In this document: one piece after another, positions 39,891-42,172 of the stretch | Layout of the letters: every line of letters begins with the position of its first letter | How positions within the stretch are numbered: position 1 is the stretch's first letter | The notes under the pieces: generated by a model | Database searches by the model: none | Told to the model about the DNA's origin: nothing | What the model saw: only the letters and a program-made list of their open reading frames with translations | Assembly: GCA_021613535.1 (NCBI GenBank) | Contig: CP075497.1 | Location: 7,130,001-7,194,000 of the forward strand | Direction: 5' to 3' | DNA from: Adineta vaga | Lineage: Eukaryota; Animalia; Rotifera | DNA: 64,000 nt | Made by a program: the position numbers and the translations under genes

Positions 39891-42172
39891 ATGATCGCAT
39901 CCTGGTATATCTACAAGGTATAAAGAAATCGATATCTATTTTATTTTTTTTAAAGACTTAAAATTGAAGTAATAACTTTCTAATTTGTATAAATAAATCT
40001 TAATCTTTTGACAGGTCTTAACTCCAACGTCTACGAAACATCAAGAATTAATTGATAATCAACAAGCTGAAGAAGAATATTATTATAGTGAAATGGCTGC
40101 ATTTAATCGTCAAAATGGGAATTCAAGTGAAACACGATCCATTGGTGGTGGAAGTTTAACCGATGATGAATCAAATCTGTCAGATAAAATGCGAACAAAT
40201 TTAATAATTAATTATCTTCCACAAACAATGACACAAGATGAAATTAAAGATCTATTTGGTTCAATTGGTGCAATTGAATCTTGTAAACTAGTTCGAGATA
40301 AAACAACAGGTCAAAGTCTTGGCTATGGATTTGTTAATTTTGTTCGAACAGAAGATGCTGATAAAGCAGTTAAAACAATGAATGGTCTTCGATTACAAAA
40401 TAAAACAATAAAAGTAAATTTTCTTTTCTTACTTTAATTCGATTGATATTAAGATAGAATACAGATATCTTTTGCACGTCCTTCATCGGAAACAATTAAA
40501 TTTGCTAATTTATATATTTGTGGAATTCCAAAACAGTGGACAATAAAAGAACTTGAAACTTATTTTTTATCATGTGGAAAAATTATTACAAGTCGAATAT
40601 TAACTGATTCGAATACAGGTTCTAATGAGATAAAAAGATAACTGTGCTGCTCAATGAATATAATTTTAATTTTGATTTTATTTTGATTTTGTTACTTTTC
40701 TTTCAGGTTTCTTTTGCTCGTCCTTCTTCTGAGTCAATCAAATTTTCCAATCTTTATATTTCAAATCTTCCACATTCGATGACTCAGGAGGAACTTGAGA
40801 GTATGTTTGCTGATTTTGGTTCTATTATTTCGTCGAAAATTCTTTGCAATCCTAACGCAGGTAGAAAATATAGTCTTCTAAACTGATCATTCTTTAGTCT
40901 ATACTTTTCGTTTTTTTTTTTGTTCAAATTCGAATCTTTTTTAATCAGAGAGATATTGGTTTTAGGTACATCCAAAAGTGTTGGATTTATTCGTTTTGAT
41001 CAACGATCAGAAGCTGAAGTGGCTATTAATAAACTTAATGGTACTATTCCAAAAGGTAATCAAGTTTAATAAGTGCAAATTATTCTTGTAAAAGAAAAAT
41101 AGAATTATACAGTAGCGTATCTAGTTACTATGACGAGAATGTTTTGATAGTATTGAATATGATTGAAATTGATAATATACAGAAAGATGATCTTTCTCTT
41201 GATAATCCTGTATAAGAGAAGAGTTATTTTCATAGTTCAGATTATACGTTGTCTTACTTAGCCTCAATTTAAATCTCGTTCTTTGAGATCTATAGTTTCA
41301 GTTTGAGAAGTGTTGTATTCATTCATTCTACTAAAATACTTTCAGGTTTCACTGATCCAATTAATGTCAAATTTGCTAATACACCAAATGCTGCTAAATC
41401 TATGATTGGTTTACCATTAGCACCATCCTATTTAACAGGTATTCCAACACCACAACAACCGGTTCTTACAACTGTACCACCTATGCGTCAACAATTGAAT
41501 AGGTACAGGTATGCTGCTGTAAAAAGTCTTTTCCTAAAGACTAAATATAATTTCATGCTTTTCATATGTTTGCAAATTCTAAGTTCTTATGCATAGAGAA
41601 ACACATGAAAGATCAAAGTATCGGTAAGTGTTTGTGCATCTGTGTTGTATTGATTAGTTTTTCTTCAAATTCAAATTCAAAATTTTTTTTCCTTTTTCTT
41701 CAGTAACAACAATCTTTCGTTTTTGTTCATATAGATATTCTCCATTATCACCAGCCGATTTCTTTGCTGCAGCTTCATATTTACCTGCTGCAGCTGCAGC
41801 AGCAGCATCAGCTACAACCTTATCACCCTCAACTGGTAAATTGATTGATATATCTTTTCTTGACATTTACATGAAAATATATCCTTTTTAGATATAGCAT
41901 CTGTTGGTTGGTGTATATTTGTTTATAATCTTGCACCTGAAACGGAAGAAAGTATTCTATGGCAATTATTTGGACCATTTGGTGCTGTACAAAATGTTAA
42001 AATAATTCGAGATTTTCAATCACAAAAATGTAAAGGTTTCGGTTTTGTTACTATGACAAATTATGATGAAGCATTAATGGCAATTAATTCTCTTAATGGT
42101 TTTACACTTGGTAATCGCGTATTACAAGTATCATTTAAAACCAATAAACCAATGCCTATTCGTGCTTTCTAG
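39891..42172 (+). CDS. ELAV: ELAV/Hu three-RRM RNA-binding protein, with alternative first exons and mutually exclusive RRM2 exons
   Basis: [44 protein letters not shown]; PINVKFAN; RYSPL hinge; [54 protein letters not shown]. Confidence 0.96.

Follow-up and report, generated by a model that had tools for sequence, protein, structure and literature searches.

Mutually exclusive exons derived from tandem duplication are classically represented by the Dscam exon clusters, unc-32, N-cadherin and PKM. In neurons, ELAV/Hu proteins act as master regulators of how mRNA is processed, and their known isoform diversity resides mostly in the hinge. The gene described here, I4U23_029481 of the bdelloid rotifer Adineta vaga, lies in a window of 64,000 nucleotides (contig CP075497.1, positions 7,130,001 to 7,194,000, forward strand) whose own numbering is used below, and carries two neighbouring homologous exons, A and B, that encode the first half of RRM2. 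As in Dscam, unc-32, N-cadherin and PKM, the homologous exons are adjacent and of equal length and phase, and one of them would be chosen; the rotifer pair differs from these systems in that its selection mechanism is putative and in that a frame and nonsense-mediated decay (NMD) rule applies.

Within the ELAV/Hu family, honeybee elavl2 provides another case in which alternative splicing alters RRM2 or the hinge. The elavl2 report (PMC8553928) places alternative exons 3a and 4a in the β2-β3 loop of RRM2 and describes an ancient hinge microexon. The 3a/4a site matches the intron position at the 3' end of rotifer exons A and B, and the rotifer gene, like bee elavl2, contains a hinge microexon, of 27 nt. 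In contrast to the homologous, mutually replacing exons of the rotifer, the bee exons are cassette insertions or skips, and a check of that report for the relevant terms gave no mention of mutually exclusive exons. The rotifer hinge microexon (41597-41623) sits, by the same source, at the position where bee elavl2 and human HuB-D have a hinge microexon subject to alternative splicing; the contig 3 paralogue of A. vaga encodes the same peptide there, and public bdelloid models occur both with and without it.

Text searches of the literature returned no account of an ELAV/Hu gene whose RRM2 exons are mutually exclusive. The initial annotation had stated that no such gene was known, which stands as far as papers are concerned and falls short for database records, where the RefSeq annotation of the mollusc Patella vulgata provides a counterpart. 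The isoforms X1 (XP_050399963.1) and X2 (XP_050399964.1) of its ELAV-like protein 1 have 363 residues each and differ only in a 51-residue segment, the same segment that is swapped between bdelloid A and B (VS[YF]ARPS.. to ..TG). On a related genomic contig (L025), two exons of 154 nt each lie in tandem, bordered by AG/GT and with the phases of the bdelloid pair. The exon order is nevertheless reversed, with the mollusc 'LYISG' type first and the 'LYICG' type second, a tree of the 51 residues does not unite the mollusc pair with the rotifer pair, and position 13 is Phe in both bdelloid exons while it is Gly in all other sequences compared, the mollusc included. These three differences suggest that the mollusc and bdelloid duplications are independent, recurrent duplication being the likelier history. 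The Patella vulgata swap is a database annotation for which a published description was not found. The A/B swap would thus add to an already familiar type of splicing a case from a family of genes for which no prior description was found.

Results

Gene identity and exon organisation

Sequence comparison clearly places I4U23_029481 in the ELAV/HuD family. Its exons translate into exactly the sequence of public protein P0220, which is recorded as hypothetical protein I4U23_029481 [Adineta vaga], and RNA-contig joints together with the translation locate the gene on the + strand from ~39795 to ~42300, an RNA contig starting near 39795, 5' of the first coding exon. On the family model TIGR01661 (ELAV_HUD_SF, cut-off 279.1 bits) the B form, P0220, scores 487.5 bits and the A form, represented by P0159 of Adineta steineri, 472.7 bits, and in the same comparison the sex-lethal model scores under its own cut-off. 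Pfam RRM_1 matches three stretches, and the exon map runs in the order RRM1, RRM2, hinge, RRM3. The top solved structures for both forms are those of HuD (1FXL/1G2E), HuC (1FNX) and HuR (4ED5), with E values of 1e-62 to 1e-69. The features of the locus are as follows.

39891..39917, + strand: first coding exon with the start codon, encoding MIASWYIYK; joint 39917>40015 in run X1; matches P0220
40015..40413, + strand: exon encoding the N-terminal region and the entire RRM1, ending in phase 0; donor GT at 40414-15; joint 40413>40707 in runs X1, X2 and X3
40414..40464, + strand: intron 5' of exon A, 51 nt, with a weak purine-rich acceptor region (..gatagaatacag)
40465..40618, + strand: exon A, 154 nt, assigned to the ancestral rotifer type; open frame; without cover by RNA contigs
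40619..40706, + strand: A-B intron, 88 nt, with a weak donor (gttcta) and a U-rich tract at ~40660-40706
40707..40860, + strand: exon B, 154 nt, assigned to a derived bdelloid type (..LYISNLP..IISSKIL..); found in RNA contigs and in every public isoform of A. vaga
40966..41055, + strand: exon for the latter half of RRM2 (RNP1, ..SVGFIRFD..), common to both forms; joint 40860>40966 in four runs
41346..41508, + strand: exon that completes RRM2 and begins the hinge; from RNA contigs and translation
41597..41623, + strand: hinge microexon, 27 nt (..ETHERSKY..); in contigs of all four runs
41735..41835, + strand: hinge exon; from RNA contigs and translation
41892..42172, + strand: RRM3 exon with the stop codon; from RNA contigs and translation

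Several further transcript features surround the exon pair. Upstream of 40015 the public isoforms display two N-termini, MIASWYIYK and MRMLQ, implying alternative first exons, and both N-termini are also found in Rotaria and A. steineri models. A contig of run X3 (41479-41611) retains the intron at 41509-41596, for which a second joint, 41506>41582, is also seen, and the public isoforms P0206 and P0221 run into the same intron and terminate early. Loose ends of RNA contigs recur across runs at 42304, 42811-42820 and 39848-39865, and one X3 contig joins 42321 to 39848 through 24 other letters; these recurrent ends may be assembly chimeras or repeated sequence of the 3' UTR.

Architecture of the exon pair

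Exons A and B are equal in length (154 nt) and identical in 56% of residues and 58% of bases. Exon A is bordered by AG at 40463-64 and GT at 40619-20 and exon B by AG at 40705-06 and GT at 40861-62, and both are open, with entry in phase 0 and exit in phase 1. A frame check on the joined exons establishes that the A-only and B-only reading frames both continue through, that joining A to B creates a stop 8 codons into B, and that omitting both leads to a stop ~50 codons later. Since 154 is not a multiple of 3, the use of one exon or the other is enforced at the protein level. The initial annotation had proposed tandem homologous exons of 154 nt each, open and of identical phases, whose joint inclusion or joint omission would shift the frame, and all of this is borne out, premature stops arising in both cases; the end of the upstream exon, which it had put at 40412, lies at 40413 and is followed by the GT at 40414-15. 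The difference in 'codon style' that it had mentioned is likewise found, GC content being 27% in A and 36% in B, and is accompanied by an abnormally low synonymous divergence of B that is described below.

Exon B is the default form in A. vaga

The RNA data consist of assembled contigs, which may drop minor variants, from four runs of two studies. The joint 40413>40707, leading from RRM1 directly into exon B, is present in contigs of three runs (X1, X2 and X3, one study), and the joint 40860>40966, leading out of B, in contigs of all four runs and both studies. Depth over 40426-40667 is zero in all four runs, and exon A falls within the 293-nt interval that the contigs skip. Among the contigs of the four runs, assemblies in which rare variants can be lost, no joint into or out of A and no A+B joint (40618>40707) were found. 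All three public A. vaga isoforms (P0206, P0220 and P0221) use B, and the public annotation of this species lacks exon A. Exon B is thus the default form in A. vaga, as indicated by its presence in the RNA contigs of four runs and in all three public isoforms. Searches of protein collections with a 291-aa read-through protein containing the A segment, and with exon A alone, found no spliced A-type transcript, the matches being only genomic read-throughs and gene models, and a matching search with B recovered the spliced B-type transcripts P0197 and P0202. A contig break at 40380/40404 is interpreted as the effect of 35 bases shared with the contig 3 paralogue, and not as a branch to exon A.

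The zero cover of exon A in four RNA runs and the B-only public annotation, together with the weak acceptor and donor of A, would fit a dead duplicate or pseudo-exon that is never spliced in, so that the gene makes the B form alone. The same lack of cover would also fit a role as poison exon only, in which A is included together with B and NMD of the product tunes ELAV levels, no A-type protein being made. The stop 8 codons into B accords with this second possibility. Transcripts of this kind would be rare in steady-state RNA, in keeping with the lack of cover, and splicing under auto- and cross-regulation is a known trait of ELAV/Hu genes; the 40618>40707 joint that this possibility predicts is nevertheless not among the contigs of the four runs.

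Conservation of exon A in bdelloid rotifers

A phmmer search with exon A identified read-through ORFs, 82-92% identical, in other assemblies. A related-locus search of metagenomes with exon A gave no match, and a metagenome scan with a degenerate pattern from inside the exon located six loci, all genomic. The contigs of the ORF matches and of the metagenome scan together provided 10 further loci (the window excluded) with a complete exon A. The AG, the GT and the open frame of A are retained in all 10 loci, and the length of 154 nt in nine of them. The remaining locus (L031, exon A at 908-1049) has an exon of 142 nt, which lost 12 nt in frame between two ACAG repeats and with them its last four codons, while phase and donor are retained. 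Exon A is followed by exon B on every contig long enough to carry both, with a gap of 82-178 nt (L017, L018-21/L030, L022, L024, L028, L031 and L032), and A stands alone on the short contigs L023, L027 and L029. The recurrence of the tandem pair in independent assemblies of other bdelloids rules out chance or an assembly artefact as its origin, the latter having been deemed unlikely from the outset.

Among A orthologues pS ranges from 0.26 to 0.85, with synonymous sites near saturation, nonsynonymous differences amount to 5-16% and dN/dS is 0.08-0.16; the nonsynonymous divergence of A (0.07-0.15) is not above that of B. The dN/dS of B is 0.11-0.31, with a value of 0.90 for one near-identical B pair that has 4 differences in all, so that A is constrained no less than B. 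The dN/dS comparison of both exons, which the initial annotation had called for across rotifers, thus shows purifying selection on both in bdelloids. Proteins annotated in Adineta steineri and in four species of Rotaria have A spliced between RRM1 and the next exon, B models are found in other assemblies of those same species, and the automated models choose A or B inconsistently. The A-type models in other bdelloids derive from BRAKER with same-species or cross-species RNA hints, and show the presence of A in these genomes rather than its expression.

The dN/dS of 0.08-0.16, combined with splice sites and a frame that are intact in 10 of 10 loci, indicates that exon A is not a relic. A neutral sequence would not keep its open frame and its AG/GT borders in all 10 loci near synonymous saturation, nor would its nonsynonymous divergence be expected to stay as low as that of B, and we regard the dead duplicate as very improbable, even though the loss of A from the contig 3 paralogue, described below, implies that the exon is dispensable in at least one gene copy. 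Similarly, an exon acting as poison alone would depend on no more than its length and splice sites, and its peptide could drift; the observed dN/dS is ~0.1, the residues that define an RRM are retained, and the 12-nt in-frame deletion in L031 preserves the phase for use of A alone, which makes this role improbable too. Mutually exclusive exons giving rise to two ELAV proteins, as initially proposed, are well supported by architecture, frame and selection; as to the part of the proposal that has exon A in mRNA, the A. vaga RNA contigs give B-only joints and all three public isoforms use B.

Age and polarity of the duplication

The A-B pS is 0.67-0.73, near saturation, against 0.21-0.44 in the compared exons of the A. 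vaga paralogues. The paralogue on contig 3 (L006; G000 contig 3, 9270053-9273205) carries B only, and its intron contains no remnant of exon A. Loci of other bdelloids with the contig-3-type N-terminus (L017, L031, L032 and P0160) carry A, which is therefore found in both ohnologue types. The presence of A in both gene copies of other bdelloids implies that the duplication predates the split of the copies and that A. vaga lost A from one of them. The contig 3 paralogue also has an additional intron inside RRM1 (L006 1144-1252), and L017 has the same intron yet keeps exon A.

For 11 of 13 outgroup sequences, exon A is the nearer of the two exons. A tree built on the 51 residues, a number of columns that leaves groupings rough, joins A to Seison nebaliae and to a rotifer-like gene that has no introns (support 85/90) and, with the same roughness, B to transcript P0211 (support 89/82). 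These comparisons indicate that A resembles the ancestral rotifer sequence and that B is the derived copy. The Phe shared by both exons at position 13 suggests either that the duplication took place in the bdelloid stem or that gene conversion later affected the 5' end. An intronless ELAV gene on a metagenome contig (L026 1158-2354) has an A-like RRM2 (..ICGIPKHW..); a rotifer outside the bdelloids may be its source, or it may be a retrocopy.

The loss of A from one A. vaga paralogue also bears on a further possibility, in which the bdelloid ancestor had a functional exon A that other species still use, and that recently fell out of use in A. vaga without having decayed so far. The absence of A from the A. 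vaga RNA contigs and public isoforms would agree with such disuse, as would the start of the A. vaga exon with ATA (Ile) in place of GTN. The Ile start is nevertheless common to A. steineri and L027 and does not constitute a private lesion, and the A. vaga exon is intact, with 8.7 synonymous and 5.3 nonsynonymous differences and a dN/dS of 0.15 relative to its closest relative, L023. We consider recent disuse unlikely.

Predicted structural consequences of the exon swap

Alignment with HuD and HuR, for which the RRM2 elements were assigned with the domain description in a report on HuR (PMC11838611), places in the swapped exon the RRM1-RRM2 linker, β1 (RNP2), α1, β2 and the start of the β2-β3 loop. 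A and B have almost the same linker, and RNP1 is encoded by the shared next exon. The differences between the two exons cluster just after RNP2 (CGIPKQW in A vs SNLP.SM in B), in α1, in β2 (IITSR vs IISSK) and in the loop. The A and B proteins should thus differ in the RNA-binding face and in the helical face of RRM2, from which we infer a difference between them in the binding of RNA or of partners.

Splice signals and synonymous constraint in exon B

In all species compared, the acceptor region of A is rich in purines and its donor is poor (gtt/gtg), while B is preceded by a long U-rich tract ending in tttcag and has the donor gtaga (gtata in L031). The initial annotation had pointed out both features, a weak acceptor rich in purines at A and a U-rich tract ahead of B, and both are thus present here and conserved in other bdelloids. 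The tract at ~40660-40706 contains repeated (A/G)U4 units, is the putative site of the autoregulation that the initial annotation had proposed, and doubles as the ordinary polypyrimidine tract of B. The contrast between the splice signals fits B as the default and A as a candidate regulated exon. With 82-178 nt (88 nt in the window), the intron between A and B exceeds several introns in the gene (51, 56 and 88 nt), and steric exclusion is therefore unlikely to keep the two exons apart.

The synonymous divergence of B was compared with that of four constitutive exons of the same gene in distant pairs. The pS is 0.27 in exon B vs 0.75 in the constitutive exons between the window and L017 (p = 7e-7), 0.20 vs 0.74 between L006 and L017 (p = 8e-9) and 0.32 vs 0.75 between the window and L022 (p = 2e-6). 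The synonymous divergence of exon A is like that of the constitutive exons, and exon B resists the GC shift of richer genomes. The low synonymous divergence of B suggests that regulatory signals at the nucleotide level are embedded in this exon.

The last ~30 nt of the RRM1 exon (40380-40413) can pair with exon B at ~+108 to +135, a predicted pairing that recurs in the same register in six of nine bdelloid loci, with energies of -8 to -19 kcal/mol in inverted-repeat and duplex scans. The pairing is weakly better than in synonymous-resampled controls (fractions 0.02-0.25), and no covariation was found in it across the loci compared. RNA pairing as the exon selector was set aside, being AU-rich, weak and free of covariation, and A-rich and U-rich sequences pair readily.

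Discussion

The A/B pair is real and conserved, and its exons are most likely mutually exclusive. Probably the exon for the first half of RRM2 was duplicated in tandem long ago, and A and B, the two copies, are used as alternatives in the bdelloid ELAV/Hu gene. One exon would have to be picked, as inclusion of both or neither leads to a frameshift and an early stop. Exon B, with a strong polypyrimidine tract and the better donor, would be the default choice, and exon A, which keeps the ancestral sequence and has weak splice sites on both sides, would probably be included at a low level or in a cell-, stage- or condition-specific manner. The swap would replace β1 (RNP2), α1, β2 and the start of the β2-β3 loop and leave the linker and RNP1 almost unchanged. 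Whereas the architecture, the frame logic, the use of B and purifying selection on both exons are shown, we infer that exon A still enters mRNA and protein in present-day A. vaga and that the two isoforms have different functions.

A broader and distinctly more tentative scenario adds that the same ELAV exon was tandemly duplicated independently in bdelloids and in molluscs, giving module-swapped proteins with different RNA- or partner-binding surfaces. The derived B form would be the default and the ancestral A form would be reserved for restricted cells or states, the choice being set by signals in B and by the U-rich tract, possibly with pairing of the 3' end of the RRM1 exon or with ELAV itself.

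The exon swap described here would rewrite half of an RRM, is kept across bdelloids and has a counterpart in a mollusc. If this reading is true, the locus would be a natural experiment in which the specificity of one RNA-binding domain is retuned inside a single gene, and, with introns of 51 and 88 nt, it would offer a compact system for the study of the choice between two exons.
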